From contig JANJGN010000010.1 in NCBI GenBank assembly GCA_026770705.1, positions 40,238,001 to 40,302,000 of the forward strand: a DNA stretch of 64,000 nucleotides, given 5' to 3'. The notes under the pieces are model-generated. The model worked only from the letters and a program-made list of their open reading frames with translations. It was not told the DNA's origin and made no database searches. This document shows positions 1-62,735 of the stretch, one piece after another (within the stretch, counting starts at the first letter, position 1; each line of letters begins with the position of its first letter). Origin of the DNA: Isurus oxyrinchus (lineage: Eukaryota). The position numbers and the translations under genes are program-made.

Positions 1-52
1 TCATTTTTACTGTTAGGTTCACTTTTAGCATTTGTAGAGTTTCCCTGCAAAT
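1..52 (-). CDS. Repeat exon, short type, cut by the window edge
   Basis: Same acceptor at 53-54; open to the window start. Confidence 0.6.
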   Translation of the reverse strand, partial: MCRETLQMLKVNLTVKM

Positions 53-1394
53 CTACATGAACAAAAATATACATGCCATTGTAAACTCATTGCATACAGG
101 CGCTGAAACTACACTGGTAATGCAGTTCAATAATCATAAAAGAATACCTATGTATTTTGTTAAGCTTAATGTGCCTTCATCTCAGGACAGATATTATTAT
201 TTCTCAGCTAAGTGCTGCATGAGGGGCCTTCAGAATAATGCAAAATTTCATCTCACAGTGAATAATAGTGCCTTGTAGGCTTCGCTCCTTTTCCTCAATA
301 TACATCAATCAATTAGCTTCAAATATTATTGGTAGAATTGTACAACATAGATTCGCATGCTAGCGACATATCTTTTTGGGTTCAAATCATTGTACCAAGA
401 ACGTACTTTAATGTAACGATACATCAATGAAGTTCTACGCTATAAAATGGATCTATTTCTGAATTCTCTATTTTGATCATTTTATCAAATATTATGACCA
501 GTGTGAGAATTCAGCATTCCATCCAAAATGAGTTAGTTTTCAGACAAGATATCTCCTCAAGTCCTGGACTGGAACATCAACACATATCCCCCTGACTGAC
601 AGAACAGGTTTCTGAATAATGGAGCTAATACTTCCTGGAATATGAGAAGGCACTTTGTGCTTTTGATTCTTTAGTGAAAAACAATTCATATTTTCTCCAT
701 TTCAAAGAATACATAAGCCATTTCATTACAACTATAGCCTCCACCATCCATTGCAATCCCTTAGTATATTTACTTTCTCAGTACTTCCACTAGCATGCCT
801 TATTTCTGCTGACTTCTCTACATCCCTTCTTTATTATGTGTTCTCTGTACTTAACATAACATCAAGCAAAAGAAAGATATCTCAACTGGAGTATTTTTAA
901 TCCTTTCTGAGAAAGGAACCTCCACCCAATTCGACAAGCTGTATTTTTGCTCCTCAAGTCCAGTATTGATGATGTGACAGAAGGAAAACAGAAAAGTGAA
1001 TGCTAACTTTGTCTAAATAGACAAGTCCTGATCTGTTTCAAAGGATAGGGAATCTCCATTTGCACTAATGGGGCAGACATTCCGTTGCTCCAATTCTGCA
1101 TGAGTGATATCCACCTGGAGCTCGGCCAAGAACCTTCCTGTGGCACCTGATCACTCAGAGCATGATAGAGGGAGCCAAGAAAGCGTCCAAGCAACAAGAT
1201 TGTTCTGTTCACCTTTGCTTCTCATTTTGTTTAGTGTGTCAATCTCAAAAAAACTGTTGGCCAACATCATCACTGAGCTCGGCCTACATCATCAATGAGA
1301 TTTTGCAAACTGGAGCATTCTCCTACATTCCTCATCATCAATAAATTGTATTTCTATTTATTTGGTTAAATACTGCTTTGTCAGGGGAATCTTC

Positions 1395-1695
1395 CAAATA
1401 CACAACCATTGGGATGTAGATCAGGATAAGCAGCAGGTAGAGGGGCACACCAACACATGCAACTTCCTCTCTAAGACTTACAAAATCCGGACTTGGAAAT
1501 ATGTGTCAATCCTTCATGGGCACTGGGTTGAAAACCAGAAACTGCCTCCCGATTAGCTCTGTGGATGTACCTAGACCACACGGATTGCAGCAATTCCAGA
1601 ACCAGCATTAGCATCATACCATGGACAATTAATGATGCTAATAAATGTACGATCTGTCAAAATTACCCACATCCCATCAGCAAATAAGTGAAAGC
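1395..1695 (+). mobile_element. Decayed LINE 3' end embedded in every array unit (first full copy shown)
   Basis: Aligns by eye with LINE 3' ends at 42340-42612 and 57780-58035 (gacttggaaata, ccttca..g.cactggg, aataaatg, cccacatcccat). Confidence 0.75.
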
Positions 1696-1709
1696 TTTGC
1701 GCAACTTAC

Positions 1710-1799
1710 TATTTTCTTCATTCTTTACACTGCCGGTTCCCTGTTCTTCATTTTTACTGTTAGGATCACTTTTAGCATTTGTAGAGTTCCCCTGCAAAT
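1710..1799 (-). CDS. Repeat exon, short type 90 nt (xLQGNSTNAKSDPNSKNEEQGTGSVKNEEN)
   Basis: Acceptor tttttgttcatgtag, donor A|gtaagt; phase 1-1; open. Confidence 0.68.
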
Positions 1800-12351: not shown

Positions 12352-14008
12352 CTACATGAACAAAAATATACATGCCATTGTAAACTCATTGCATACAGGC
12401 GCTGAAAATACATTGGTAATGCAGTTCAATAATCATAAAAGAATACCTATGTATTTAGTTAAGCTTAATGTGCCTTCTTCTCAGGACAGATATTATTATT
12501 TCTCAGCTAAGTGCTGCATGAGGGTCCTTCAGAATAATGCAAAATTTCATCTCGCAGTGAATAATAGTGCCTTGTAGGCTTCCCTCCTTTTCCTCAATAT
12601 ACATCAATCAATTAGCTTCAAATATTATTAGTAAAATTGTACAACATAGATTCACATGCGAGCGACATATCTTTTTGGGTTCAATCATTGTACCAAGAAC
12701 GTACTTCAATGTAACGATACATCAATGAAGTTCTACGCTATAAAATGGATCTATTTCTGAATTCTCTATTTTGATCATTTTATGAAATATTATGACCAGT
12801 GTGAGAATTCAGCATTCCATCCAAAATGAGTTAGTTTTCAGACAAGATATCTGCTCAAGTCCTGGACTGGAACATCAACACATATCCCCCTGACTGACAG
12901 AACAGGTTTCTGAATAATGGAGCTAATACTTCCTGGAATATGAGAAGGCACTTTGTGCTTTTGATTCTTTAGTGAAAAACAATTCATATTTTCTCCATTT
13001 CAAAGAATACATCAGCCATTTCATTACAACTATAGCCACCACCATCCATTGCAATCCCTTAGTATATTTACCAACTCAGTACTTCCACTAACATGCCTTA
13101 TTTCTGCTGACTTCTCTACATCCCTTCTTTATTATGTGTTCTCTGTCCTTAACATAACATCAAGCAAAAGAAAGATATCTCAACTGGAGTATTTTCAATC
13201 CTTTCTGAGAAAGGAACCTCCACCCAATTAGGCAAGCTGAATTTTTGCTCCACAAGTCCAGTATTGATAATGTGACAGAAGGAAAACAGAAAAGTGAATG
13301 CTAACTTTGTCTAAATAGACAAGTCCTGATCTGTTCCAAAGGATAGGGAATCTCCATTTGCACTAATGGGGCAGACATTCCGTTGCTCCAATTCTGCATG
13401 AGTGATATCCACCTAGAGCTCGGCCAAGAACCTTCCTGTGGCACCTGATCACTCAGAGCATGATAGAGGGAGCCAAGAAAGCGTCCAAACAACAAGATTG
13501 TTCTGTTCACCTTTGCTTCTCATTCTGTTTAGTGTGTCAATCTTAAAAAAAACTGTTGGCCTACATCATCACTGAGCTAGGCCAACATCATCAATGAGAT
13601 TTTGCTAACTGGAGCATTCTCCTACATTCCACATCATCAATAAATTTCATTTCTTTTTACTTGGTTAAATACTGCTTCATCAGGGGAATCGTCCAAATAC
13701 ACAACCATTGGGATCTAGATCAGGAGAAGCAGCAGGTAGAGGGGCACACAAACACATGCAACTTCCTCTCTAAGACTTACAAAATCCGGACTTGGAAATA
13801 TGTGTCAATCCTTCATGGGCACTGGGTTGAAAACCAGAAACTGCCTCCCGATCAGTTCTGTGGATGTACCTACACCACACGGATTGCAGCAATTCCAGAA
13901 CCAGCATTAGCATCATACCAAGGACAATTAATGATGCTAATAAATGTACGATCTGTCAAAATTACCCACATCCCATCGGCAAATAAATGAAAGCTTTGCG
14001 CAACTTAC

Positions 14009-14128
14009 CATTTTCTTCATTGTTTACACCGTCCATTCCCTGTTCACGGTTTGCTGGTTTGTCATTATGAACCTCCACCATTTCAGTCGTAGGTTCACTT
14101 TTATCATTTGAAGAGTTTCCCTTCGAAT
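14009..14128 (-). CDS. Repeat exon, long type 120 nt
   Basis: Same splice sites; open. Confidence 0.68.
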
Positions 14129-15810
14129 CTACATGAACAAAAATATACATGCCATTGTAAACTCATTGCATACTGGATCTGAAACTAAACTGATAATGCA
14201 TTTGAATAATCATAAAAGAATACCTGTGCTTTTAGTAAAGCTTAATTTTCCTTCACCTCAGGACAGATATTATTATTTCTCAGCTAAGTGCTGCATGAGG
14301 GACCTTCAGAATAATGCAAAATTTCATCTCACAGTGAATAATAGTTCCTTGTATGCTTCCCTCCCTTTCCTCAATATACATCAATCAATTAGCTTCAAGT
14401 ATTATTGGTAAAATTGTACAACGTAGTTTCACATGCGGCCCAGGAACCTACTAGCAACATATCTTTTTGGGGTTAAATCATTGTACAAAGAATGTACTTC
14501 AATGTAACGATACATCAGTGAAGTTCTACGCTGAAAAATGGATCTATTCCTGAATTCTACATTTTGATCATGCTATCAAATATTATGACAAATGTGTGAA
14601 TTCATCATTTCATCCAAAATGAGTTAGGTTTCAGACAAGATATCAGCTCAAGTCCTGGACTGGAACATCAACATATTTCCCACAGACTGACAGACCAGGT
14701 TTCTGAATAATGGAGTTATTACTTCGATGAATATGACAAGGCATTTTGTGCTTTTGATGCTTCAGTGAAAAACAATTCATATTTTCTCCATTTCAAAGAG
14801 TACATAAGCCATTTCGTTACAACTATTGCCTCCACCATCCATTGCAATCCCTTAGTATATTTACTTTCTCAGTACTTCCACTAGCATGCCTTATTTCTGC
14901 TGACTTCTCTACATCCCTTCTTTATTATGTGTTCTCTGTCCTTAACATAACATCAAGCAAAAAATGATATCTCAACTGGATTATTTTTAATCCTTTCTGA
15001 GAAAGGAACCTCCACCCAATTAGACAAGCTGAATTTTTGCTCCTCAAGTCCAGTATTGATGATGTGACAGAAGGAAAACAAAAAAGTGAATGCTAACTTT
15101 GTCTAAATAGACATGTCCTGATCTGTTTCAAAGGATAGGGAATCTCCATTTGCACTAATGGGGCAGACATTCCGTTGCTCCAATTCTGCATGAGTGATAT
15201 CCACCTGGAGTTCGGCCAAGAACCTTCCTGTGGCAACTGATCACTCAGAGCATGATAGAGGGAGCCAAGAAAGCGTCCAAACAACAAGATTGTTCTGTTC
15301 ACCTTTGCTTCTCATTTTGTTTAGTGTGTCAATCTCAAAAAAAACTGTTGGCCAACATCATCACTGAGCTAGGCCTACATCATCAATGAGATTTTGCTAA
15401 CTGGAGCATTCTCCTACATTCTCCATCATCAATAAATTGTATTTCTATTTATTTGGTTAAATACTGCTTCGTCAGTATTCGTCAGGGGAATCTTCCAAAT
15501 ACACAACCATTGGGATGTAGATCAGGAGAAGCAGCAGGTAGAGGGGCACACCAACACATGCAACTTCCTCTCTAAGACTTACAAAATCCGGACTTGGAAA
15601 TATTTGTCAATCCTTCATGGGCACTGGGTTGAAAACCAGAAACTGCCTCCCGATCAGCTCTGTGGAGGTACCTAGACCACACGGATTGCAGCAATTCCAG
15701 AACCAGCATTAGCATCATACCAAGGACAATTAATGATGCTAATAAATGTACGATCTGTCAAAACTACCCACATCCGATCAGCAAATAAATGAAAGCTTTG
15801 CGCAACTTAC

Positions 15811-15900
15811 TATTTTCTTCATTCTTTTCACTGTCGGTTCCCTGTTCTTCATTTTTACTGTTAGGATCACTTTTAGCATTTGTGGAGTTTCCCTGCAAAT
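15811..15900 (-). CDS. Repeat exon, short type 90 nt
   Basis: Same splice sites; open. Confidence 0.68.
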
Positions 15901-17558
15901 CTACATGAACAAAAATATACATGCCATTGTAAACTCATTGCATACAGGCGCTGAAACTACACTGGTAATGCAGTTCAATAATCATAAAAGAATACCTATG
16001 TATTTAGTTAAGCTTAATGTGCCTTCATCTCAGGACAGATATTATTATTTCTCAGCTAAGTGCTGCATGAGGAGCCTTCAGAATAATGCAAAATTTCATC
16101 TCGCAGTGAATAATAGTGCGTTGTAGGCTTCCCACCCTTTCCTCAATATACATCAATCAATTTGCTTCAAATATTATTGGTAAAATTGTACAACGTAGAT
16201 TCACATGCCAGTGACATATCTTTTTGGGTTCAAATCATTGTACCAAGAACGTACTTTAATGTAACGATACATCAATGAAGTTCTACGCTGAGAAATGGAT
16301 CTATTTCTGAATTCTCTATTTTGATCATTTTATCAAATATTATGACCAGTGTGAGAATTCAGCATTCCATCCAAAATGAGTTAGTTTTCAGACAAGATAT
16401 CTCCTCAAGTCCTGGACTGGAACATCAACACATATCCCCCTGACTGACAGAACAGGTTTCTGAATAATGGAGCTAATACTTCCTGGAATATGAGAAGGCA
16501 CTTTGTGCTTTTGATTCTTTAGTGAAAAACAATTCATATTTTCTCCATTTCAAGGAATACATCAGCCATTTCATTACAACTATAGCCTCCACCATCCATT
16601 GCAATCCCTTAGTATATTTACTTTCTCAGTACTTCCACTAGCATGCCTTATTTCTGATGACTTCTCTACATCCCTTCTTTATTATGTGTTCTCTGTCCTT
16701 AACATTACATCAAGCAAAAGAAAGATATCTCAACTGGAGTATTTTCAATCCTTTCTGAGAAAGGAAACTCCACCCAATTAGACAAGCTGAATTTTTGCTC
16801 CTCAAGTCCAGTATTGATAATGTGACAGAAGGAAAACAGAAAAGTGAATGCTAACTTTGTCTAAATAGACAAGTCCTGATCTGTTTCAAAGGATAGGGAA
16901 TCTCCATTTGCACTAATGGGGCAGACGTTCCGTTGCTCCAATTCTGCATGAGTGATATCCACCTGGAGCTCGGCCAAGAACCTTCCTGTGGCACCTGATC
17001 ACTCAGAGCATGATAGAGGGAGCCAAGAAAGCGTCCAAACAACAAGATTGTTCTGTTCACCTTTGCTTCTCATTTTGTTTAGTGTGTCAATCTCAAAAAA
17101 AACTGTTGGCCAACATCATCACTGAGCTAGGCCTACATCATCAATGAGATTTTGCTAACTGGAGCATTCTCCTACATTCCCCATCATCAATAAATTGTAT
17201 TTCTATTTATTTGGTTAAATACTGCTTCGTCAGGGGAATCTTCCAAATACACAACCATTGGGATGGAGATCAGGAGAAGCAGCAGGTAGAGGGGCACACC
17301 AACACATGCAACTTCCTCTCTAAGACTTACAAAATCCGGACTTGGAAATATGTGTCAATCCGTCATGGGCACTGGGTTGAAAACCAGAAACTGCCTCCCG
17401 ATCAGCTCTGTGGATGTACCTAGACCACACGGATTGCAGCAATTCCAGAACCAGCATTAGCATCATACCAAGGACAATTAATGATGCTAATAAATGTACG
17501 ATCTGTCAAAATTATCCACATCCCATCGGCAAATGAATGAAAGCTTTGCGCAACTTAC

Positions 17559-17648
17559 TATTTTCTTCATTCTTTACACCGTCGGTTCCCTGTTCTTCAT
17601 TTTTACTGTTAGGATCACTTTTAGCATTTGTAGAGTTTCCCTGCAAAT
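17559..17648 (-). CDS. Repeat exon, short type 90 nt
   Basis: Same splice sites; open. Confidence 0.68.
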
Positions 17649-19305
17649 CTACATGAACAAAAATATACATGCCATTGTAAACTCATTGCATACAGGCGCT
17701 GAAAATACATTGGTAATGCAGTTCAATAATCATAAAAGAATACCTATGTATTTAGTTAAGCTTAATGTGCCTTCTTCTCAGGACAGATATTATTATTTCT
17801 CAGCTAAGTGCTGCATGAGGGTCCTTCAGAATAATGCAAAATTTCATCTCGCAGTGAATAATAGTGCCTTGTAGGCTTCCCTCCTTTTCCTCAATATACA
17901 TCAATCAATTAGCTTCAAATATTATTAGTAAAATTGTACAACATAGATTCACATGCGAGCGACATATCTTTTTGGGTTCAATCATTGTACCAAGAACGTA
18001 CTTCAATGTAACGATACATCAATGAAGTTCTACGCTATAAAATGGATCTATTTCTGAATTCTCTATTTTGATCATTTTATGAAATATTATGACCAGTGTG
18101 AGAATTCAGCATTCCATCCAAAATGAGTTAGTTTTCAGACAAGATATCTGCTCAAGTCCTGGACTGGAACATCAACACATATCCCCCTGACTGACAGAAC
18201 AGGTTTCTGAATAATGGAGCTAATACTTCCTGGAATATGAGAAGGCACTTTGTGCTTTTGATTCTTTAGTGAAAAACAATTCATATTTTCTCCATTTCAA
18301 AGAATACATCAGCCATTTCATTACAACTATAGCCACCACCATCCATTGCAATCCCTTAGTATATTTACCAACTCAGTACTTCCACTAACATGCCTTATTT
18401 CTGCTGACTTCTCTACATCCCTTCTTTATTATGTGTTCTCTGTCCTTAACATAACATCAAGCAAAAGAAAGATATCTCAACTGGAGTATTTTCAATCCTT
18501 TCTGAGAAAGGAACCTCCACCCAATTAGGCAAGCTGAATTTTTGCTCCACAAGTCCAGTATTGATAATGTGACAGAAGGAAAACAGAAAAGTGAATGCTA
18601 ACTTTGTCTAAATAGACAAGTCCTGATCTGTTCCAAAGGATAGGGAATCTCCATTTGCACTAATGGGGCAGACATTCCGTTGCTCCAATTCTGCATGAGT
18701 GATATCCACCTAGAGCTCGGCCAAGAACCTTCCTGTGGCACCTGATCACTCAGAGCATGATAGAGGGAGCCAAGAAAGCGTCCAAACAACAAGATTGTTC
18801 TGTTCACCTTTGCTTCTCATTCTGTTTAGTGTGTCAATCTTAAAAAAAACTGTTGGCCTACATCATCACTGAGCTAGGCCAACATCATCAATGAGATTTT
18901 GCTAACTGGAGCATTCTCCTACATTCCACATCATCAATAAATTTCATTTCTTTTTACTTGGTTAAATACTGCTTCATCAGGGGAATCGTCCAAATACACA
19001 ACCATTGGGATCTAGATCAGGAGAAGCAGCAGGTAGAGGGGCACACAAACACATGCAACTTCCTCTCTAAGACTTACAAAATCCGGACTTGGAAATATGT
19101 GTCAATCCTTCATGGGCACTGGGTTGAAAACCAGAAACTGCCTCCCGATCAGTTCTGTGGATGTACCTACACCACACGGATTGCAGCAATTCCAGAACCA
19201 GCATTAGCATCATACCAAGGACAATTAATGATGCTAATAAATGTACGATCTGTCAAAATTACCCACATCCCATCGGCAAATAAATGAAAGCTTTGCGCAA
19301 CTTAC

Positions 19306-19425
19306 CATTTTCTTCATTGTTTACACCGTCCATTCCCTGTTCACGGTTTGCTGGTTTGTCATTATGAACCTCCACCATTTCAGTCGTAGGTTCACTTTTA
19401 TCATTTGAAGAGTTTCCCTTCGAAT
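19306..19425 (-). CDS. Repeat exon, long type 120 nt
   Basis: Same splice sites; open. Confidence 0.68.
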
Positions 19426-21096
19426 CTACATGAACAAAAATATACATGCCATTGTAAACTCATTGCATACTGGATCTGAAACTAAACTGATAATGCATTT
19501 GAATAATCATAAAAGAATACCTGTGCTTTTAGTAAAGCTTAATTTTCCTTCACCTCAGGACAGATATTATTATTTCTCAGCTAAGTGCTGCATGAGGGAC
19601 CTTCAGAATAATGCAAAATTTCATCTCACAGTGAATAATAGTTCCTTGTATGCTTCCCTCCCTTTCCTCAATATACATCAATCAATTAGCTTCAAGTATT
19701 ATTGGTAAAATTGTACAACGTAGTTTCACATGCGGCCCAGGAACCTACTAGCAACATATCTTTTTGGGGTTAAATCATTGTACAAAGAATGTACTTCAAT
19801 GTAACGATACATCAGTGAAGTTCTACGCTGAAAAATGGATCTATTCCTGAATTCTACATTTTGATCATGCTATCAAATATTATGACAAATGTGTGAATTC
19901 ATCATTTCATCCAAAATGAGTTAGGTTTCAGACAAGATATCAGCTCAAGTCCTGGACTGGAACATCAACATATTTCCCACAGACTGACAGACCAGGTTTC
20001 TGAATAATGGAGTTATTACTTCGATGAATATGACAAGGCATTTTGTGCTTTTGATGCTTCAGTGAAAAACAATTCATATTTTCTCCATTTCAAAGAGTAC
20101 ATAAGCCATTTCGTTACAACTATTGCCTCCACCATCCATTGCAATCCCTTAGTATATTTACTTTCTCAGTACTTCCACTAGCATGCCTTATTTCTGCTGA
20201 CTTCCCAACATCCCTTCTTTATTATGTGTTCTCTGTCCTTAACATAACATCAAGCGAAAGAATGATAACTCAACTGGAGTATTTTCAATCCTTTCTGAGA
20301 AAGGAACCTCCACCCAATTAGACAAGCTGAATTTTTGCTCCTCAAGTCCAGTATTGATGATGTGACAGAAGGAAAACAGAAAAGTGAATGCTAACTTTGT
20401 CTAAATAGACAAGTCCTGATCTGTTCCAAAGGATAGGGAATTCCATTTGCACTAATGGGGCAGACATTCCGTTGCTCCAATTCTGCATGAGTGATATCCA
20501 CCTAGAGCTCGGCCATGAACGTTCCTGTGGCACCTGATCACTCAGAGCATGATAGAGGGAGCCAAGAAAGCGTCCAAACAACAAGATTGTTCTGTTCACC
20601 TTTGCTTCTCATTTTGTTTAGTGTGTCAATCTTAAAAAAAACTGTTGGCCTACATCATCACTGAGCTCGGCCTACATCATCAATGAGATTTTGCTAACTG
20701 GAGCATTCTCCTACATTCCCCATCATCAATAAATTGTATTTCTTTTTATTTGGTTAAATAATGCTTCGTCAGGGGAATCTTCCAAATACACAAACATTGT
20801 GATGTAGATCAGAGAAGCAGCAGGTAGAGGGGCACACCAACACATGCAACTTCCTCTCCAAGACTTACAAAATCCGGACTTGGAAATATATGTCAATCCA
20901 TCATGGGCACTGGGTTGAAAACCAGAAACTGCCTCCCGATCAGCTCTGTGGATGTACCTAGACCACACGGATTGCAGCAATTCCAGAACCAGCATTAGCA
21001 TCATACCAAGGACAATTAATGATGCTAATAAATGTACGATCTGTCAAAATTATCCACATCCCATCGGCAAATAAATGAAAGCTTTGCGCAACTTAC

Positions 21097-26523: not shown

Positions 26524-26561
26524 CTACTTGAACGAAAATATACATGCCATTGTATACTCAT

Positions 26562-28300: not shown

Positions 28301-28339
28301 ACCCACCACGACTTTCATTTCACTTATATTAGGCAGCGT

Positions 28340-44689: not shown

Positions 44690-46435
44690 GGAGATCAGGC
44701 ATACCTAAAAATGAGGTACCAACATGGGGAAGCTACAACACAAGACTGCAAGCATGCTAAACAATGGAAACAGCAGAACTAAGTGATCCCACAACCAAAA
44801 GGTCAGTTCAATGCCCTGCAGTCTTACCACAACTAGTTGCAAATGGTGGTGGACAAGTACTAATGGGATAAGGAGTGCCATGACCCATTCTCAATGATGG
44901 ATGAGCAAAGCACCTTATTGCAAAAGACAAGGCTGAAGCATTGCAACCATTTTCAACCAAAAGTCCTAAGTGGATGATCCATCTTGGCTTCCTCCCCCAT
45001 CATCACAGATACCAGTTTTCAGTTAATCCGATTCACTCCTTGTGATATGAAGAAGAGGCTGAGCACCCTGGACACAACAAAGTTTGTGGGTTCCAACAAC
45101 ATCCTTCCTGTAGTCCTGAAGATTTGCGCTCCAGAACTAACCAACTCACTTAGCCAAACTGTTCTAATACAGCCACACACCAGAAAGTACCTGATAATAT
45201 GCAAAATTGCCCAGGTATGTCCTGCCTACAGAAAGGACATACCGAATCCAGCCAGTAAGCTTCCCATCAGTCTAATCTCAATCATCAGAAAAATAATGGA
45301 AGAAGCTGTCAACTGTGTAAACTAGAGACACTTACTTATCAATAACCCACTCATCGATGCTCAGTTTAGGTTCCACTATGATCATTTAGCTCCTGACCTC
45401 ATAATAGCATTGGTCCAAGCATGGACAAAAGAGGTGAATTCCAGAAGTAAAATGAGAGATGACCTGCCCATGACATGAAGACAGCATTTGACTGTGCTGT
45501 GGCATCAAGGACCCCTCAAACAATTGAAGTCAATGAGAATCGAGGGTAAACTTTTCACTGGCAGAAAGGAAAATTGTTGTGGTTGTTGGAGGAAAATCAT
45601 CTCAGCCCCATGACATTGATGCAGGAGTTCCTGCAGGCAGTGCCCTATGCCCAACCATCTTCAGCTGCTTCATCGATGATCTTCCCCCCATTATAAGATC
45701 AGAAAAAAAAGTGTCAATGACTATATAAGATTCAGCTCCATTCATAACTCCTCTGATAATGAAGCAGTCCATGTCAGCATGAAGCAAGAACTGGACACCT
45801 TAAGGCTTGGGCTGATAAGTGGCAAGTAACAATTGTGCCACACAATTGCCAGGTAATAACCAACTCCAACAAGAGAGAATCTAACCATCACTATTCTGTG
45901 CCAAGTAACTCACCTCCTGACATCCCAAATCCTTGTAAAAGGCACAAATCATGAGTGCAATGGAATACTCCCACTTTCCTGGATGAGTGCAGCTCCAACA
46001 ACACTCAAAAAGCTCAACCCCATCCAGGACAAAACAGCCCACTTGATTGGCACCCCACCCACCACCTGAAACCTTCACTCCCTCCAACCCGATGCACAAT
46101 GGCAGCAGTGTGTGCCATCCAAAAGATGCACTGTAGCATCTCGCCAATGTTTCTTCAGCAACCCCTTCCAAATTGCAACCTCTACCATTAGAACAGAGAC
46201 AACAGACACATGGAAACAATACCACCTGCAAGCTCCTCTCCAAGTCACACACCATCCTGACTTGGAAATATATAATCATCCTTTCACCGTCACAAAGTCT
46301 TAGAGCTCCCCATCTAAGAGCACTGTGAGTGTAGCTGAACTGGATAGACTACAGCAGTTCAAGAGGATGCCCTTCTCAAGGGCAATTCAGGACAGTCACT
46401 AAACAACACCTACTGGCCATGAATTAAAAAAAAGC
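44690..46435 (+). mobile_element. Decayed CR1/L2-group LINE, same family as 33700-35760
   Basis: Same RT-region sequence (gcaggagttcct..ggcagtgcccta..cccaaccatcttcagctgcttcatc) and the same 3' tail. Confidence 0.85.
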
Positions 46436-47060: not shown

Positions 47061-47951
47061 CTGTGCAGAAAGCAAATGTAAATTTAAGTATAGGTTACAG
47101 AGGTTAATAACACAACAGCAATATGCTGGCAAAATTGTACTGTACAGATAAGGTTTAGATTTTCTGGCTTTGTAGTAACGTAAGATTTGAACCAAATGCC
47201 TTCCTTTCCCTTTCCATGTTTTCACATGGAGCCATTCAAGTTTCAATATAATTTGTGATGCCACCAAGTCATAGAATTTCCAACAAACAAAACAGCTTTT
47301 GGTTTGAAGTGGAACTTCATGAATTGGAATCCGAAATGTTTGTCTTAGTCTTTTCTCAGGCATATATTTTGAAATCAAATACACAGTGTCCTAACCTCAT
47401 CTGGGAACCCCCAAAGTTGATCATTTCGACTTCCTTTTCCCAATAGTAGGTCAGGGCAAATTGAACAGCCTATGCATACCATAAAAGGAAGGAACTCAAT
47501 ATGCTAAATGGAGTTTGTGAGTCCTATCTGTGGATTGAGTGTTCAAGCCCTCAGAAATGTGAGATTCTTTTTTTTAATTCTTCTTAAAAGGAAGCTAATG
47601 GGCAATGCAGAGGGAGCAATTGCTTGAACACAGATCTACGTAACAATGTGTCAGCATGCAGCCTTAGGCCGAATGTGGGGACCTGGGATAGCTCCAAGCT
47701 GGGCATACTTAAATTTTGTGACCCTCCCAATAATCCACAAACAATGGGGTTAATCAGTCCAGGACCCTGACAGGCAAGACTCCTGCAATGCCTTGTAACT
47801 TCAGAGGAAGTGGAGAAGAAATATATGCATAAATAAGCTTTTTGCCATGCTTTTGGCAAAGTTATGGGGCACAGCGGGAGTAACTCTGAGGAAATAATCA
47901 TTACTTATAGACTTACAGATTTTTTGATGTCATTTAACAAAAAAAAATACA

Positions 47952-50900
47952 GAGATAAAAACAAAAAAATGCGGATGCTGGAAATCTAACACAAAATCAG
48001 AATTACCTGGAAAAACTCAGCAGGTCTGGCAGCATCAGCGGAGAAGAAAAGAGTTGACGTTTTGAGTCCTCATGACCCTTCAACAGAACTAGGTGAATAC
48101 CAGGAAGGGTTGAAATATAAGCTGGTTGAAGGTGCGGCGGGTGGGGTGGGGGGGTGGGGGGGTGGGTGGGGGTGGTGAGGGGGTGGTGGTTGGGGGGGGC
48201 GGAGTAGAGAATTGGAGGGGGTGGTGTGATTGTAGGCAAAAGCAGTGATAGAAGCAGATCATCAAAAGATGTCACAGATGGCAGAACAAAAGAACACATA
48301 GGTGTCGAAGTTGGTGATATTATCTAAACGAATGTGCTAATTAAGAATGGATGGTAGGGCACTCAAGGTCTAGCTCTAGTGGGGGTGGGGGGAACATAAA
48401 AGATTTAAAAATATTTAAAAATAATGGAAATAGGAGGGAAAAAAGAAAAATCTATATAATTTATTGGAAAAAAACAAAAGAAGGGGGAAGAAACAGAAGG
48501 GGGGTGGGGATGGAGGAGGGAGGTCAAGACCTAAAGCTGTTGAATTCAATATTCAGTCCAGAAGGCTGTAAAGTGTCTAGTCGGAAGATGAGGTGTTGTT
48601 CCTCCAGTTTGCGTTGGGCTTCACTGGAACAATGCAGCAAGCCAAGGACAGACATGTGGGCAAGACAGCAGGGTGGAGTGTTGAAATGGCAAGCGACAGG
48701 GAGGTTTGGGTCATTCTTGCAGACAGACCGCAGGTGTTCTGCAAAACGGTCGCCCAGTTTACGTTTGGTCGCTCCAATGTAGAGGAGACCACATTGGGAG
48801 CAACGAATGCAGTAGACTAAGTTGGAAGAAATGCAAGTGAAATGTTGCTTCACTTGAAAGGAGTGCTTGGGCCCTTGGACGGTGAGGAAAGAGGAAGTGA
48901 AGGGGCAGGTGTTACATCTTTTGCGTGGGCATGGGGTGGTGCCATAGGTGGGGGTTGGGGAGTAGGGCGTGATGGAGGAGTGGACCAGAGTGTCCCGGAG
49001 GGAACAATCCCTACGGAATGCCAACCGGGGAGGTGAAGGGAAAATGTGTTTGGTAGTGGCATCATGCTGGAGTTGGCGGAAATGGCGGAAGATGATGCTT
49101 TGAATGCGGAGGCTGGTGAGGTGATAAATGATGACAAGGGGGACTCGATCATGTTTCTGGGGGGGAGGAGGAGGCGTGAGGGCGGATGCGCGGGCGATGG
49201 GCCGGACACGTTTCAGGGCCCTGTCAATGACTGTGGGTAAAAAACCTCGGTTGAGGAAGAAGGAGGACATGTCAGAGGAACTGTTTTTGAAGGTAGCATC
49301 ATCAGAGCAGATGCGACGGAGGCAAAGGAACTGAGAGAATGGGATGGAGTCCTTACAGGAAGCGGGGTGTGAGGAGCTGTAGTCAAGGTAGCTGTGGGAG
49401 TCGGTAGGCTTGTAATGCATATTGGTGGACAGTCTATCACAAGAGATTGAGACAGCGAGGTCAAGGAAGGGAAGGGAAGTGTCAGAGATGGACCACGTGA
49501 AAATGATGGAGGGGTGGAGATTGGAAGCAAAATTAATAAATTTTTCCAAGTCCCGACGAGAGCACAAAGCAGCACCAAAGTAATCGATGTACCGGAGAAA
49601 GAGTTCTGGAAGGGGGCCAGAGTAGGACTGGAACAAGGAATGTTCCACATACCCCATAAAGAGACAGGCATAGCTGGGGCCCATGCGGGTACCCATAGCC
49701 ACACCTTTTATTTGGAGGAAGTGAGAGGAGTTGAAGGAGAAATTGTTCAGTGTGAGAACAAGTTCAGCCAGACGGAGGAGAGTAGTGGTGGATGGGGATT
49801 GTTCGGGCCTCTGTTCGAGGAAGAAGCTAAGGGCCCTCAGACCATCCTGCTGGGGGATGGAGGTGTTGAGGGATTGGACGTCCATGGTGAAGAAGAAGCG
49901 GTTGGGGCCAGGGAACTGGAAATTGTTGATGTGACATAAGGTGGCAGAGGGATGTAGGTGGGAAGGGACTGGACAAGGGGAGAGAGAAGGGAGTCAAGAT
50001 AATGAGAGATGAGTTCTGTGGGGCAGGAGCAAGCTGACACGATCGGTCTACCGGGATAGTTCTGTTTCTGGATTTTGGGTAGGAGGTAGAAGCGGGCCGT
50101 CCGAGGTTGGGCAACTATCAGGTTGGAAGCTGTGGGAGGAAGATCCCCAGAGGAGATGAGGTCAGTGACAGTCCTGGAAACAATGGCTTGATGTTCAGTG
50201 GTGGGGTCATGGTCCAGGGAGAAGTAGGAGGAAGTGTCTGTGAGTTGACGCTCAGCCTCCGCAAGGTAGAGGTCAGTGCACCAGACAACAACAGCATCAC
50301 CCTTGTCAGCGGGTTTGATGATGATGTCAGGGTTGGACCTGAGAGAATGGAGTGCAGTAAGTTCAGCGAGAGAGAGATTAGAATGGGTGAGAGGAACAGA
50401 GAAATTGAGATGACTAATGTCGCGCCGACAGTTCTCAATGAAAAGATCAAGAGAAGGTAAGAATCTAGAGGGAGGGGTCCAGGTGGAGGGAGAATATTGG
50501 AGGTGGGTGAAAGGATCCGTTGAACGGGGAGAGGACTCCTGCCCAAAGAAGTGAGCCCGGAGACGAAGACGGCGGAAGAAGAGTTCAGCATCGTGCCAAG
50601 CCCGAAATTCATTAAGGTGAGGGCGTAGGGGTATGAAACTAAGTCCTTTGCTGAGCACTGAATGTTCAGCGTCGGAGAGGGGAAGGTCAGGGGGTATATT
50701 GAATATACGGCTGGGGCTGGGATTGGAAGATGGGGTGGGGACGGAGGGACAGGCAGGGGTGGAGGGTCCTTGATGGGTGTTGGTGTCGATGAGTTGTTGG
50801 AGCTTGCGTTCCTTAGCACTTGAGAGAAAGAGAAAAAGTTTCTTGTTGAGGCGTCGGATGAGCCGAAGAATAAAATGAAACTGGGGGCACGCGCTGTTTT

Positions 50901-52478
50901 GGAAAAGGGTACGGCGGTGCTGCTGGAGGGAGAGGTCGAGTGTGTTCATATTGCGGCGCATGGCACTGAGTGTGGATCTCAGGATGCAATGGGAACAGCA
51001 GTCCGAGAAACGATTTATGTCCCGGAAATACCTGTAATCCTGGGTGGGTTCGAAACATGGGTGGAATTTCAGTTGAAATCCACGTGGGCTAATTCGGAGA
51101 CGGAGACAGTCACTTGGAAAGGAGATATGGCTGTGAAAGCAGGTTTTAGTAAACACCTTGTCAAGCACCAGGAGAGAAATGGAAAGCAATAAAGGTGAAC
51201 AAGGCAAACGAGAGATACGGAAATCTTGTCACAGAGACGAACAGAACTTTTTCAAGGAGGTAGGCCTTTCTTGAAGAGCAGTGGCAGTCAATTAAACACA
51301 GAGATAAAAACAAAAAACTGCGGATGCTGGAAATCTAAAACAAAATCAGAATTACCTGGAAAAAGTCAGCAGGTCTGGCAGCGTCGGCGGAGAAGAAAAG
51401 AGTTGACGTTTCGAGTCCTCATGACCCTTCAACAAATCTAGGTGAATCCCAGGAAGGGTTGAAATATAAGCTGGTTGAAGGTGCGGCGGGGGGGAGTTGG
51501 GTGGAGGGAGAGAAGTGGAGGGGGTGGTGTGGTTGTAGGCAAAAGCAGTAATAGAAGCAGATCATCAAAAGATGTCACAGACGGCAGAACAGAAGAACAC
51601 ATAGGTGTTAAAGTTGGTGATATATATCTAAACGAATGTGCTAATTAAGAATGGATGTAGGGCACTCAAGGTCTAGCTCTAGTGGGGGTGGGGGGAGCAT
51701 AAAAGATTTAAAAATATTTTAAAATAATGGAAATAGGAGGGAAAAAAGAAAAATCTATATAATTTATTGGAAAAAAACAAAAGAAGGGGGAAGAAACAGA
51801 AGGGGGGTGGGGATGGAGGAGGGAGGTCAAGACCTAAAGTTGTTGAATTCAATATTCAGTCCGGAAGGCTGTAAGGTGCCTAGTCGGAAGATGAGGTGTT
51901 GTTCCTCCAGTTTGCGTTGGGCTTCACTGGAACAATGCAGCAAGCCAAGGACAGACATGTGGGCAAGAGAGCAGGGTGGAGTGTTAAAATGGCAAGCAAC
52001 AGGGAGGTTTGGGTCATTCTTGCGGATAGACCGCAGGTGTTCTGCAAAGCAGTCGCCCAGTTTACGTTTGGTCTCTCCAATGTAGAGGAGACCACATTGG
52101 GAGCAACGAATGCAGTAGACTAAGTTGGGGGAAATGCAAATGAAATGTTGCTTTACTTGAAAGGAGTGTTTGGGCCCTTGGACGGTGAGGAGAGAGGAAG
52201 TGAAGGGGCAGGATATACATCTTTTGCATGGGCATGGGGTGGTGCCATGGGGTTGGGGAGTAGGGGGTGATGGAGGTGTGGACCAGGGTGTCCCGGAGGG
52301 AACGATCCCTACGGAATGCCGACAGTGGGGGTGAAGGGAAGATGTGTTTGGTAGTGGCATCATGCTGGAGTTGGCGGAAATGGCGGAGGATGATCCTTTG
52401 AATGCGGAGGCTGGTGGGGTGATAAGTGAGGACAAGGGGGACCCTATCATGTTTCTGGGTGGGAGGAGAAGGCGTGAG
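47952..52478 (-). mobile_element. Penelope-like retroelement (RT + GIY-YIG), near full length, with an upstream partial tandem copy (51300-52478)
   Basis: ORFs 49837-51207 and 48524-49885: KPADKG, PGRPIVS, DVQSL, GVAMGTRMGPSYA, VYCIRCSQCGLLYIG, GLN. One frameshift; RT motif reduced to YIDY. Confidence 0.93.
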
Positions 52479-55400
52479 GCCTTGAGTGCCCTACATCCAT
52501 TCTTAATTAGCACATTCGTTTAGATAATATCACCAACTTCGACAACTTGTGTTCTTTTGTTCTGCCATCTGTGACATCTTTTGATGATCTGCTTCTATCA
52601 CTGCTTTTGCCTACAACCACACCACCCCCCTCCACTTCTCTCCCCCCACCCAAACCCCACCCCCCACACCCCCACCTTCAACCAGCTTATATTTCAACCC
52701 TTCCTGGGATTCACCTTGTTCTGTCGAAGGGTCATGAGGACTCGAAACGTCAAATCTTTTCTTCTCCGCCGATGCTGCCAGACCTGCTGACTTTTTCCAG
52801 GTAATTCTGTTTTTGTTTTGGATTTCCAGCATCTGCAGTTTTTTGTTTTTATCTCTGTGTTTAATTGACTGCCACTGCTCTTCAAGAAATGCCTACCTCC
52901 TTGAAGAAGTTCTGTTCTTCTCTGCGACAAGATTTACGTATCTCTCTGTTGCCTTGTTCACCTTCATTGCTTTCCATTTCTCTCCTGGTGCTTGACAAGG
53001 TGTTTACTAAAACCCGCTTTCACAGCCATATCTCCTTTCTCAGTGACTGTCTCCGTCTCCGACTTACCCTACATGGATTTCAACTGAAATTCCACCCCTC
53101 ATGTTTCGAACCCACCCAGGATTACAGGTATTTCCGGGACATAAAACGTTTCTCGGACTGCTGTTCCCATCACATCCTGAGATCCACACTCAGTGCCATG
53201 TGCTGCCATATGAACACACTCGTCCTCTCCCTCCAGCAGCACCGCCGTACCCTTTTTCAACGCGGCGCGTGCCCCCAGTCTCATTTTACTCTTCGGCTCA
53301 TCCGACGCCTCAACAAGAAACTTTTTTCTTTCTCTCAAGTGCTAAGGAACGCAAGCTCCAACAACTCATCGACACCAACACCCATCAAGGACCCTCCACC
53401 CCTGCCTGTCCCTCCGTCCCCACCCCATCTTCCAATCCCAGCTCCAGCCGTATATTCATTATACCCCCTGACCTTCCCCTCTCCGATGCTGAACATTCAG
53501 TGCTCAGCAAAGGACTTAGTTTCATACCCCTACGCCCTCACCTCAATGAATTTCGGGCTCGGCACGGTGCTGAACTCTTCTTCCGCCGTCTTCGTCTCTG
53601 GGCTCACTTCTTTGGGCAGGAGTCCTCTCCCCATTCAACGGATCCTTTCACTCACCTCCAATATTCGCCCTCCACCTGGACCCCTCCCTCTGGATTCTTA
53701 CCTTCTCTTGATCTTTTCATTGAGAACTGTCGGCGCGACATTAGTCGTCTCAATTTCTCTGTTCCGCTCACCCATTCTAACCTGTCTCTCTCTGAACTTA
53801 CTGCACTCCATTGTCTCAGGTCCAACCCTGACATCGTCATCAAATCCGCAGACAAGGGTGGTGCTGGTGTTGTCTGGTGCACTGACCTCTACCTCGCGGA
53901 GGCTGAGCGTCAACTCACAGACACTTCCTCCTACCTCTCCCTGGATCATAACCCCACCACTGAACATCAAGCCATTGTTTCCAGGACTGTCACTGACCTC
54001 ATCTCCTCTGGGGATCTTCCTCCCACAACTTCCAACCTGATAGTCGCCCAACCTCGGACGGCCCGCTTCTACCTCCTACCCAAAATCCACAAACAGAACT
54101 GTCCCGGCAGACCGATCGTGTCAGCTTGCTCCTGCCCCACAGAATTCATCTCTCGTTATCTTGACTCCCTTCTCTCTCCCCTTGTCCAGTCCCTTCCCAC
54201 ATACATCCGTGATTCCTCTGACACCTTACGTCACATCAACAAGTTCCAGTTCCCTGGCCCCAACCGCTTCCTCTTCACCATGGACGTCCAATCCCTCTAC
54301 ACCTCCATCCCCCACCAGGATGGTCTGAGGGCCCTTAGCTTCTTCCTCGAACAGAGGCCCGAACAATCCCCATCCACCACTACTCTCCTCCGTCTGGCTG
54401 AACTTGTTCTCACACTGAACAATTTCTCCTTCAACTCCTCTCACTTCCTCCAAATAAAAGGTGTGGCTATGGGTACCCACATGGGCCCCAGCTATGCCTG
54501 TCTCTTTATGGGGTATGTGGAACATTCCTTGTTCCAGTCCTACTCTGGCCCCCTTCCAGAACTCTTTCTCCGGTACATCGATGATTACTTTGGTGCTGCT
54601 TCGTGCTCACGTCGGTACTTGGAAAAATTTATTAATTTTGCTTCCAATCTCCACCCCTCCATCATTTTCACGTGGTCCATCTCTGACACTTCCCTTCCTT
54701 GACCTCTCTGTCTCAATCTCTGGTGATAGACTGTCCACCAATATCCATTACAAGCCTACCGACTCCCACAGCTACCTTGACTACAGCTCCTCACACCCCG
54801 CTTCCTGTAAGGACTCTATCCCATTCTCTCAGTTCCTTCACCTCCGTCGCATCTGTTCCGATGATGCTACCTTCAAAAACAGTTCCTCTGACATGTCCTC
54901 CTTCTTCCTTAACCGAGGTTTTCCACCCACAGTCGTTGACAGGGCCCTTAACCGTGTCTGGCCCATCTCCCGCGCTTCCGCCCTCACGCCTTCTCCTCCC
55001 TCCCAGAAACATGAAAGGGTCCCCCTTGTCCTCACTTATCACCCCACCAGCCTCTGCATTCAAAGGATCATCCTCCGCCATTTCTGCCAACTCCAGCATG
55101 ATGCCACTACCAAACACATCTTCCCTTCACCCCCACGGTCGGCATTCCATAGGGATCGTTCCCTCCTGGACACCCTGGTCCACTCCTCCATCTCCCCCTA
55201 CTCCCCAACCCCCACCTATGGCACCTCCCCATGCCCACGCAAAAGATGTAACACCTGCCCCTTCACTTCCTCTCTCCTCACCGTCCAAGGGCCCAAACAC
55301 TCCTTTCAAGTAAAGCAACATTTCACTTGCATTTCCCCCAACTTAGTCTACTGCATTCATTGCTCCCAATGCATTGGAGAGACCAAACGTAAACTGGACG

Positions 55401-56134
55401 ACCGCTTTGCAGAACACCTGCGGTCTGTCCACAAGAATGACCCAAACCTCCCTGTTGCTTGCCATTTCAACACTCCACCCTGCTCTCTTGCCCACATGTC
55501 TGTTCTTGGCTTGCTGCATTGTTCCAGTGAAGCCCAATGCAAACTGGAGGAACAACACCTCATCTTCCGACTAGGCACTTTACAGCCTTCCGGACTGAAT
55601 ATTGAATTCAACAACTTTAGGTCTTGACCTCCCTCCTCCATCCCCACCCCCTTTCTGTTTCTTCCCCCTTCCTTTTGTTTTTTTCCAATAAATTATATAG
55701 ATTTTTCTTTTTTCTCTCCTATTTCCATTATTTTAAAATATTTTTAAATCTTTTATGCTCCCCCCACCCCCACTAGAGCTAGACCTTGAGTGCCCTACCA
55801 TCCATTCTTAATTAGCACATTCGTTTAGATAATATCACCAACTTCGAAACCTAAGTGTTCTTTTGTTCTGCCGTCTGTGACATCTTTTGATGTTCTGCTT
55901 CTATTACTGCTTTTGCCTACATCAACACCACCCCCCTCCACTTCTCTCCCCCAACCCAAACCCCTCCCCCCGCCCACCCCCCACACTCCCACCTTCATCC
56001 AGCTTATATTTCAACCCTTCCTGGGATTCACCTAGTTCTGTCGAAGGGTCATGAGGACTCGAAACGTCAACTCTTTTCTTCTCCGCCGATGCTGCCAGAC
56101 CTGCTGAGTTTTTCCAGGTAATTCTGTTTTTGTT
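52479..56134 (+). mobile_element. Penelope-like retroelement, full length between pseudo-LTRs, ORF 52865-55627 with two frameshifts
   Basis: FLRYIDDYFG RT motif; GIY-YIG with GLLY deleted; direct terminal repeats at ~52480-52815 and ~55785-56134. Confidence 0.93.
56034..56072 (+). ncRNA. Minimal type I hammerhead ribozyme motif in the Penelope pseudo-LTR (other copies 52717-52755 +, 51401-51440 -, 48052-48090 -, two within 43422-43498)
   Basis: AGUU-CUGUCGA-A-GGGUC(AUGAG)GACUC-GAAACGUC-AACU: stem I AGUU/AACU, 5-bp stem II, palindromic ACGU stem III. Confidence 0.7.
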
Positions 56135-57164: not shown

Positions 57165-58065
57165 CAACAACAATTTGTATTGATATAGCACATTTATGAT
57201 TGTAACATGGCCTTAGGCACTTCATAGAAGTATAACGAGACAAAAAATGATGCTGAGCCAAAGGAGGGAGGTAGTGCCAAAATCTTGGTCAAAAAGGTGA
57301 GATATAAGGAAGGTCTTAAATGAGGTAGGAAGGCGGAGAGGTCTAGTCAACTGGGGGAAAATTGGTCAATAGTAGGGCAAGAGGAGTGGTATGCAAAAGA
57401 GGCTAGAGTTGGAGGTTTGTTAGGCTGGAGCAGGTTACAAAAATATAGGGTGACAAGGTCGTGAAGGTTTAAAGAAAGAGAGAACAGTTTTAAATTTGAG
57501 ATATTAGGTGACCATGGACTAAAGTAGGTCAGCAAGGACAAAGCTGCCAGATAAAAAGGACTTGGTGCAATTTAAGGTAAGGACAACAGCGTTTCAAATG
57601 AGATGAAGCTTATGGATGGTGGTTGATGAGATCAGATCCCCAGATCATTAGTCGAATCTAGGGATGGCAAAAGTCAAGATAGGGGTTCCAGTGGTCGACT
57701 GGTTGAGTTTTGGATAAAGGTTGGACCCACAGCATCTCACCAAGGGTCCTTCAAACAGTAACTCAAACCCATGACCACTACCACCTGAAAGGACAAGGTC
57801 AGCAGATGCATGGAAACACCATCACCTGCAAATTTCCCTCCAAGCCACTCACCATCCTGACTTGGAAATATATCGCTATTCCTTCACTGTTGCTGGGTCA
57901 AAATCCTGGAACTCCCTTCCTAACAGCATTGTAGGTGCACCTGCACCACATGGACTGCAGTGGTTCAAGAAGACAGCTCACCGCCACCTTCTCAAGGGCA
58001 TTTAGGGATGGGCAATAAATGTTGGCTTAGCCAGCAAAGCCCACATCCCATGAACTATTTTTTTT
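57165..58065. mobile_element. Old L2-like fragment (-) followed by a LINE 3' end (+, 57720-58065)
   Basis: aacaacaacaatttgtattgatatagcac tail; 57780-58035 matches the 42340-42612 family. Confidence 0.6.
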
Positions 58066-61000: not shown

Positions 61001-61334
61001 AGACTCATAGAAACAGTAAGCTTACAAGTCATGAATATATTTAAATAATTAATCAATAGTTTAGTAACCATATCTGTTAAAATTCTGCTGATGCTGATTT
61101 TCAGTGTACGATGTTTATATGTGATCCAGCAATCCCTATTCGGAATGGCCTTGTCTGGAATCTAGTGGGAATGGGATCAGGCCTAGCTGTGATGCCAATT
61201 TTCAATAAACATCACCACACGCTACAAAGTAATGTCCTATAGTTTGCTGCAGTTAATTTGTGCTTTCTCTATGCAGTAGCAAGTGGACTTTGCCAATAAA
61301 CTGATTATCCTTACACTTGTAGATGTTAATACCA

Positions 61335-62575
61335 AAGTAAAACACTGCAGAAGCTGGAAATCTGATATAAAAACAGAAAAAGCTGGAAGTACTCAGCAGG
61401 TCAGGCAGCATCTGTGGAGAGAGAAACAAAGTTAACAGAGAAACGAACTATGCTTCCTCCACCTGGCTTTCTATTCCATTCTCCCAGTTTCTCTCTATCT
61501 GTGGCATCTATTCTGATGATGCCATCTTCTATCCCAGTGCTTCAATAGGCCTTCCATTTTCCACAACCAAGGTGTCCATTCCATTTCCTATGCTTCTGTT
61601 CTCATTTTCTGCCTTCCCAGCCAGAACCACAACAGGATTCCCTTGTTCTTACATTCCAATCCTCCTGCCTCCACATTCAATGGATCATCTTACCTCATTT
61701 CTGCCATCTTCAGTCTGATACGACCACAAACACATCTTCCCCTCCACACTCCTTACAGCATTGCAAAGGGTCCGGTCTATCTGTGAGATGCTAGTCCACT
61801 TCACAAGTACCCTCAACACCCCTCCCCTACCCACGACATCTTCTGTTGCAAGTGCAGTTGATGCGCCACCTGCCTTTTAACTTCCTCCCTTCCCAATGTC
61901 TTGGCCTTAAATTCTCTTTCCAAATGAAACAGCAATTTACTTCCACATCTTTCAATTTATTATACTATATTTGCTAATAATGATGCGGTCTTCTTTACAA
62001 AGATGTGGCAAAACACATTGGATGACTGTTTTGTGGAACACCTCTTTTGAGACAAAGACCCAATGCTGTTGATTGTGAGTGGAATGCTCTGCCTCACTCC
62101 CACTCTGACCTCTTTGGCCCCAGCCTCGGGTATTGTTTAGATGAAGCTCAGTGTAATCTTGAGGAACGTCATCTCAATCCTTTGATTGGGCACATTACAG
62201 CCTTCTGATATCAACACTGAATTTGAACAATTTCAGATCATGACTTCTGACCCCGTTTTTTGGACAGCAGCCAATTCTGCTATTCCCATTTACACCTTCT
62301 CCAGACCCATTTATTTCTTTTCCTGTCCCAATACCATTTTATTTTGCATAGCGCCATCGTTCCTTTAGTCACTTAATCACTCCTGCCTTCCACACTGTCA
62401 GAGATTTACTCTTTTGTTCCTCTCCTCCTCCACTTCCTGCGTCTATTCTTGATTTAAACCTGTTACATCACAAACTTTTTCCAGCTCTAATGGAAGGTCA
62501 ACCTAAAACCATAACTTTGCTTTTCTCTCCACAGATGCTGCCTGCTTAGTATTTCCAGCAATTTCTGTTTTTACT
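61335..62575 (+). mobile_element. Older decayed Penelope-like element with an inverted 5' terminal fragment
   Basis: GTLQPSDINTEF C-terminus; termini gctggaagtactcagcaggtcaggcagcatctgtggag and ctccacagatgctgcctg. Confidence 0.8.
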
Positions 62576-62686
62576 TGCAGGTGTTAACTGCAACGGAAGC
62601 GAAAACTCTCTAAAGACTTTTATTATCTGCCGATATTTTGTCATTATACAAATACTAAAAGAGAACTTAGATCAGTAATACTTTAC

Positions 62687-62735
62687 CTGATGTTGAAATC
62701 AATGATACAAGACAGCAAAAAGTCAAAATTTTCAT
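62687..62735 (-). CDS. NCR3LG1: B7-H6-like gene, coding exon 1 (signal peptide MKILTFCCLVSLISTS)
   Basis: ATG at 62735, short hydrophobic leader, ends CAG|gtaaag in phase 1 and joins the IgV exon in frame. Confidence 0.8.

Follow-up and report, generated by a model that had tools for sequence, protein, structure and literature searches.

The minus strand of a 64,000-nucleotide (nt) stretch of the Isurus oxyrinchus genome (GenBank assembly GCA_026770705.1, contig JANJGN010000010.1, forward-strand positions 40,238,001 to 40,302,000; the whole stretch is called the window here) probably carries one gene for a shark B7-H6-like protein with an exon-repeat cytoplasmic tail of more than 500 amino acids (aa). 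As we read this gene, its leader, IgV, IgC1 and transmembrane (TM) exons would be followed by a conserved exon for 31 cytoplasmic aa, a diverged repeat exon, at least 15 near-identical repeat exons and a terminal exon; the product would be a type I protein resembling B7-H6 (NCR3LG1), with a >500-aa acidic cytoplasmic tail. Sixteen repeat exons, amounting to 1611 nt and 537 codons, lie inside the window. An earlier interpretation of the same letters (the sequence-only reading) had proposed a repeat tail longer than 500 aa, and that estimate stands; its count of 15 repeat exons was one too few, the missing one being repeat exon 1 (Table 1). The coding case rests on transcripts, because sequence by itself is weak evidence here.

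Repeat exons and their transcripts

The first 26.5 kilobases (kb) of the window are uniform in composition and are occupied by a macrosatellite with a period of 1745-1802 base pairs, whose 15 units are mutually 88-100% identical and fall into three types arranged in a higher-order pattern. The first array unit is cut 37 nt upstream of its exon by other sequence, and 2.7 kb of GC-rich, very high-copy sequence lies between the array and the diverged unit. Each unit holds one candidate exon, of 90 nt in types A and B, 120 nt in type C and 81 nt in the diverged unit, bordered by ...tttttgttcatgtag on the acceptor side and gtaagttgc on the donor side; (T)CA[TA]GTAG acceptors and GTAAG or GTAAA donors are present at 16 of the 16 exons. 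None of these exons has a stop in the coding frame, the other two frames having 0-3 and 1-8. All 16 are in phase 1-1, as are the Ig and TM exons, and any number of units keeps the frame because every exon after the leader is in phase 1-1. The differences between exon types (30 nt, 6 nt and a donor shift) are without exception frame-keeping: exon 0 has lost the ancestral donor by decay, and a replacement GTAAGC further upstream maintains the frame. The array thus has the features of a coding macrosatellite, that is, kilobase tandem units of high identity, each with a complete frame-neutral exon.

Table 1. Exons, repeats and other features of the window (position 1 is its first letter; / marks a splice border)
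Feature	Position	Strand	Length	Remarks
Leader exon	62735-62687	-		ATG at 62735; encodes MKILTFCCLVSLISTS; ends in phase 1
IgV exon	56511-56173	-	339 nt	phase 1-1; Pfam V-set
IgC1 exon	47060-46740	-	321 nt	phase 1-1; Pfam C1-set, 1.3e-12
Connecting-peptide and TM exon	41609-41505	-	105 nt	phase 1-1; ...PVISAIICVTVLLCITLGCGIFIWRRQSK
First cytoplasmic exon	38486-38394	-	93 nt	phase 1-1; ccatctag/ ... /gtaagc; encodes (D)HNQDDEEKLSFLNSKSPDPKPVPHLPETGT, 31 aa
Diverged repeat unit	30525-29317	-		~72% identical to array units
Repeat exon 0	29839-29750	-	81 nt from the predicted acceptor at 29830	RNA contig entry 9 nt further upstream, in frame
1.75-kb macrosatellite	1-26561	-		15 units in the window; extends past its left edge
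Repeat exon 1	26523-26404	-	120 nt	in first array unit; acceptor caagtag, donor GTAAAT
Array exon	24754-24635	-		
Array exon	22963-22844	-		
Array exon	21186-21097	-		
Array exon	19425-19306	-		
Array exon	17648-17559	-		
Array exon	15900-15811	-		
Array exon	14128-14009	-		
Array exon	12351-12262	-		
Array exon	10603-10514	-		
Array exon	8831-8712	-		
Array exon	7054-6965	-		
Array exon	5306-5217	-		
Array exon	3547-3458	-		
Array exon	1799-1710	-		
Retroelement, long open reading frames	48524-51207	-		
Retroelement, long open reading frames	52865-55627	+		
Dispersed element	42366-42519		~180 nt	
Dispersed element	57790-57971		~180 nt	
Dispersed element	46223-46271			
Dispersed element	33797-33995		~180 nt	
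Dispersed element	each array unit		~180 nt	~230-400 nt downstream of the exon

The IgC1 exon served to choose sequencing runs, so that the choice depended on the upstream gene and was independent of the repeat, and the Logan contigs of four runs were mapped onto 24301-30300. X1 and X2 (organism A) and X3 (organism B) are small runs labelled "RNA?"; X5 (organism B) is large and DNA-like. In the array part X1-X3 have depth only in 24501-24900, 26301-26500 and 29701-29900, and zero over 24901-26300; X5 covers the array introns. X1-X3 are treated as RNA because of this exon-only depth and because their contigs end at predicted borders. At exon 1 the RNA-type contigs cover 26301-26500 only, and others lie on 24635-24754.

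The contigs define splice borders at both ends of the repeat series and within it. One X1 contig terminates precisely at 29750, where exon 0 has its shifted donor. An X2 contig of 255 nt matches 29771-29842 with no mismatch and then continues upstream as ...AACCTGTGCCACACCTACCAGAAACTGGAA; the last 30 letters of this upstream part have one exact match in the window, at 38426-38397 on the minus strand, so that an exon at 38.4 kb (the first cytoplasmic exon of Table 1) is joined to exon 0. The trinucleotide CAA is common to both sides of this junction, and entry into exon 0 falls at 29842/29839. A correction is needed at the acceptor of exon 0: entry in the RNA contig lies 9 nt further upstream than the predicted tag acceptor, and the 9 extra bases keep the frame, the TAG not being read as a codon. 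Further into the series, X2 and X3 have loose ends in which a repeat exon is followed by AATTTGCAGGGAAACTC and AATTCGCA, which are the last exon base and then the opening bases predicted for exons of types A/B and C, respectively; with their borders marked they read ...AAT A/ATTTGCAGGGAAACTC and ...A/ATTCGCA, the predicted repeat-exon starts. In X1, one contig connects 24636 back to 24754, with a single intervening letter. At the far end of the series, a 404-nt X2 contig holds the final 55 nt of a C-type exon and continues as AACAATGATCCAAGTTAACAC... (AAC AAT GAT CCA AGT TAA). This terminal exon, whose sequence begins AACAATGATCCAAGTTAA, reads Asn-Asn-Asp-Pro-Ser-stop and so closes the frame after five codons; its sequence was searched for in the window and is absent from it, which places the exon beyond the left edge. 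Predicted borders, frame and repeat-to-repeat joins are accordingly all seen in contigs, as is the joining of the last repeat to a stop-bearing exon, in agreement with the earlier proposal that the repeat exons splice in frame.

Contig depth bears on how many units enter a transcript. In X2 it is 5.2-6.5 for exon 0, for the variant of the 24754 copy and for the contig that joins the last repeat to the terminal exon, all single-copy by sequence, and 14.3 and 18.8 for contigs of a C-type variant that is present 3-4 times in the window. These ratios, contig depth being a rough measure, hint that each copy is included about once per transcript, and most units would then be included in each mRNA. 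The repeat-to-repeat junctions and the depth ratios fit serial inclusion; contigs as short as these cannot count the units in a transcript.

In the DNA-like run X5, array contigs have 25-55x the depth of the single-copy flank, and organism B may have a larger array or further copies elsewhere in its genome. An X5 contig aligned with window positions 29398-30291 has 20 differences in 894 positions of single-copy flank, organism B being a close relative and not the source; past 30291 the same contig continues into sequence that resembles an array unit more than it does the diverged unit of the window, and organism B may have a different arrangement of this locus.

Ig and TM exons and the first cytoplasmic exon

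The leader, the IgV and IgC1-set domains and the TM segment of a type I protein each have a phase-1 exon of their own, as in the B7 family. The database proteins nearest to them, from sharks and a ray, bear the NCBI name NCR3LG1-like: they include Cetorhinus maximus P0001 (273 aa, 90% identity) and proteins of Scyliorhinus canicula (211 aa) and Mobula hypostoma (273 aa), to which a partial model of S. torazame, P0003 (236 aa), may be added. The leader exon peptide is identical to the N-terminus of the Cetorhinus protein, the IgV exon is 90% identical to it, and the TM exon is visibly similar to the TM region of P0003. When compared with solved structures (PDB), the V half matches human B7-H6 chains best, at E 1e-9, with CD276 close behind at 2.7e-9; the C1 domain matches B7-H6 chains at 1e-9, with no other B7 member in the best 60 matches. 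A homologue search with the IgC1 open reading frame (ORF), confined to proteins of 69-219 aa, gave no match, longer relatives falling outside that length filter. To judge by these comparisons, the letters come from a shark, probably a lamniform, and "B7-H6-like" is a fair name for the gene. Exon map, Pfam and B7-H6 structure matches together confirm that an NCR3LG1-like gene lies upstream of the array on the same strand, as had been proposed, and its TM exon does lack a stop and does end in phase 1 (...IWRRQSK G/gtaag, from AAAAG/gtaag).

Two details of the TM exon are recorded here. Reading through its donor (41460-41505) yields KTLFNLINK-stop, with an AATAAA that overlaps the stop, and could represent an isoform with a short tail, arising when the intron is retained and the transcript polyadenylated early. 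The C-terminus of Cetorhinus P0001 (..YTWLWNLRLEKAVKRS) corresponds to the latter half of the TM exon read in its +1 frame; that protein is probably a truncated model, carrying a frameshift, real or due to an assembly error, and ending early.

The exon at 38.4 kb ties the tail to the B7-H6-like gene. Its peptide is 55% identical (E 1e-7) to residues 204-236, the last 33, of P0003, in which the homologous residues directly follow the TM region (...FWRKHSKGGNRDNEESQSFLKSVSPDHKSKLLPGPDISETGT). It is this homology to a post-TM peptide, along with matching phase, strand and order, that makes the connection, and from it we infer a splice from the TM exon to the exon at 38.4 kb. The sequence-only reading had found no other gene start between 41.5 and 29.8 kb; it had overlooked this coding exon, which lies in that interval and which begins at an AG acceptor, without a start codon. 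Inside the exon, at 38441-38446, there is a perfect donor consensus (AAC A/GTAAGT), also in phase 1, whose use would shorten the exon to 42 nt; the donor seen in the RNA contig is the downstream one.

The tail peptide and its competing explanations

All searches were made exon by exon, and composition was summed in the same way. The 537 aa that the repeat exons encode are 21% Asn, 14% Glu, 11% Ser, 9% Lys, 9% Asp and 8% Gly; Tyr, Phe, Trp and Cys are absent, and the net charge comes to about -69. Pro and Gly occur in every repeat unit, and Val, Leu, Met and Ile together make up ~8%. Each unit has one or two S/T-x-x-D/E sites of CK2 type (SKNE, TDSE, SSND). The features that the sequence-only reading had listed, namely the lack of Tyr, a sequon (NST or NSS) in each exon and the SKNE and TDSE sites, are all present in the repeat exons. 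An acidic composition without aromatics or Cys makes the tail almost certainly disordered and not a coiled coil. A cytoplasmic tail of a type I protein is suggested by the RRQSK stop-transfer sequence that follows the hydrophobic helix; conservation of N-S-S/T would often be expected by chance in so Asn/Ser-rich a peptide and by itself is no argument for an extracellular position. Runs such as TDSEKNEEN recall phospho-acidic sorting clusters. Pfam finds no family over threshold in the repeat ORFs.

Such a tail would change its length through unequal crossing-over. Our best guess at its action is that it might serve for docking or sorting, as an acidic or phospho-acidic module made multivalent by its CK2-type sites; this is the weakest step of the proposal.

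Several observations weigh against a coding tail that belongs to the B7-H6-like gene. Within the array, conservation of the exon does not exceed that of the intron, and the exon is, if anything, more variable; its variable sites, 17 nonsynonymous to 5 synonymous, stand in a roughly neutral ratio and carry no signal of purifying selection on the peptide. With so few substitutions, the lack of stops has no significance (~2 expected, by our own estimate). Concerted evolution and low divergence weaken in-array selection tests either way. Annotated homologues, at 211-273 aa, have short tails or none. A database comparison with a profile of the repeat peptide (A1, 29 positions) returned 0 matches among 1.84 billion representative proteins; a single repeat is near the detection limit, yet a multi-repeat protein would have scored, and hence that library holds no such model. 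The tail is known from DNA and transcript contigs; the RNA type of the runs is a guess, and the material consists of contigs, not reads, with rough depth and without strand, ends or isoform structure. The link from the TM exon to the 38.4-kb exon is one of homology, contigs having been mapped on 24301-30300. Finally, whichever cut is chosen at the junction into exon 0, the intron in the window lacks an AG acceptor and is GT...AA at best; this could reflect an A/G polymorphism at 29840, an error in the assembly or a genuine non-canonical site.

Some of these points recur in an explanation that concedes the tail and denies it a function. On this account a recent, tolerated macrosatellite expansion multiplied the exon together with its 1.65-kb intron, inclusion being harmless since the exon is symmetric and its product disordered. 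The high identity of the units (up to 97-100%), their higher-order structure, the want of exon conservation relative to the intron, the near-neutral 17:5 ratio, the short-tailed models of Mobula and others and a repeat peptide without homologue are all as this account would have them. What it does not lead one to expect is that 16 of 16 exons should have kept frame, splice sites and openness, that three indel or donor-shift events should all have been frame-keeping, and that diverged unit 0, at 72% identity, should still have a spliced in-frame exon. We regard a functionless expansion as a serious contender, if on the doubtful side.

The remaining alternatives deny the tail to this protein or to any protein. 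The 38.4-kb and repeat exons might form a separate transcription unit starting downstream of the TM exon, in keeping with a TM-to-38.4-kb link drawn from homology and with RefSeq-type homologue models that end soon after the TM region. Such a unit is improbable: the P0003 peptide is continuous with its TM region; the 38.4-kb exon, with phase 1-1, an AG acceptor and no start codon, is on the same strand and in the right order; and the X2 contig reaches 183 nt upstream of the junction, 90 nt beyond the 93-nt exon. The sequence-only reading had itself raised the caveat that the repeats might be used mainly in a TM-skipping isoform, as an extracellular or secreted N-glycosylated stalk. Skipping the TM exon (phase 1-1) does keep the frame, and the N-S-S/T sequon is kept in every repeat; against this, no junction from the IgC1 exon to the 38.4-kb exon or a repeat exon turned up in the contigs mapped on 24301-30300, to which the mapping was confined, the homologue of the 38.4-kb exon follows the TM region in P0003, a peptide rich in Asn, Glu and Lys with few Pro or Thr is unlike mucin-type stalks, and N-x-S/T triplets are expected by chance at 21% Asn and 17% Ser plus Thr, all of which makes a stalk hardly likely. 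The array might, lastly, be a satellite that does not code, its open frames being due to chance and the contigs to DNA contamination, given that short AG/GT-flanked open frames are common in AT-rich DNA and that the run type was guessed. X1-X3 cover exons only, with zero depth in the introns, and their contigs stop at predicted borders and cross junctions, one of them over 8.5 kb of genome. This alternative was therefore rejected, the contigs following exons and crossing exon-exon junctions; we consider it very improbable indeed. One minus-strand gene with an exon-repeat cytoplasmic tail is the reading that we retain in what follows.

Neighbouring repeats, significance and known systems

Other repeats surround these exons. 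A dispersed element of ~180 nt is common to the array units and other sites in the window, at 65-80% identity, and each macrosatellite unit thus probably carries an old interspersed repeat, a short interspersed element (SINE). The GC-rich stretch at 26600-28700 has an X5 contig depth of 13,000-32,000, as against ~9 in the single-copy flank, which makes it a very abundant interspersed repeat; it is this sequence that truncates the first array unit. It is followed at 28767-29224 by small tandem repeats, with CT-rich units of 18 and 36 nt, where RNA-type contigs are nearly absent (trace X3 depth only). A 77-nt tandem unit occurs in 2.3 copies at 39388-39565. The IgV-IgC1 intron contains, at 47900-55700, two large retroelement copies in opposite orientation. 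Pfam finds RVT_1 in one of the two; a C-terminal motif, YIGETKRKLGDRFAEHLRS, for which Pfam has no hit, resembles the GIY-YIG endonuclease known from Penelope-like elements.

Among the receptor-ligand pairs of innate cytotoxic cells, that of NKp30 and B7-H6 is one of the oldest; to our knowledge, the part that the ligand plays within the displaying cell is poorly understood. The tail described here is supported by transcripts and is absent from every gene model found (211-273 aa); automatic annotation drops exon arrays that lie inside macrosatellites. The exon-repeat mechanism is otherwise known from only a few genes (chicken BG, LPA and the PEVK region of titin). A bolder proposal, which we offer as speculative and rather unlikely, is that a young coding macrosatellite sets the tail length of this natural killer (NK) cell ligand: with at least 16 units here and perhaps tens in a related shark, the tail might span 500 to >1000 aa, vary between individuals and species, and serve as a tunable multivalent phospho-acidic scaffold for surface display or signalling. 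If tail length does vary between individuals, it would provide a natural allelic series for tail function; if the proposal as a whole is true, it would disclose a new route of polymorphism in an immune ligand, inside the cell and not at the binding face.

The accessible papers that were searched hold nothing on shark B7-H6 tails; systems known elsewhere offer comparisons. Human B7-H6 (NCR3LG1) has the same layout of leader, IgV, IgC1 and TM, and its structures are matched by the V and C1 domains of the shark protein. Its tail is reportedly a single Gag-related sequence with Tyr-based motifs; the shark tail is unrelated to it, lacking Tyr throughout the 537 aa of its repeat exons, having no Pfam family in the repeat ORFs and being built from repeated exons. 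A Gag-like tail is probably a mammalian feature that does not define orthologues. In kringle IV-2 of human LPA, near-identical kilobase tandem units contribute complete frame-neutral exons that are spliced in series, with copy number setting the length of the protein. The shark array is likewise a coding macrosatellite with complete, frame-neutral exon content in every unit; the LPA unit encodes a folded extracellular domain from two exons, whereas the shark unit has one short exon for a low-complexity cytoplasmic segment. The PEVK region of titin is encoded by dozens of short symmetric exons, variably included, and is disordered and charged; its exons are old and diverged and belong to a muscle spring protein, unlike the young, homogenised array of a membrane ligand.

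The sequence-only reading had taken the architecture to be without precedent among B7 proteins. It is not: the BG genes of the chicken, which belong to the B7/butyrophilin superfamily, have tails of 13-36 small repeated exons, each of 21-24 nt, encoding heptads (PMC4046983). A BG protein and the shark protein are alike in being Ig-domain membrane proteins with a long cytoplasmic tail made from many small repeated exons after the TM segment. They differ in that BG has a single V domain and heptad exons of 21-24 nt that form a coiled coil, whereas the shark exons, of 81, 90 or 120 nt, are rich in Pro, Gly and Asn and of disorder type, and come one to each 1.75-kb macrosatellite unit. An exon-repeat tail was thus already known; what is new is the use of long, non-heptad exons, carried in a young coding macrosatellite, as the tail of a B7-type protein.

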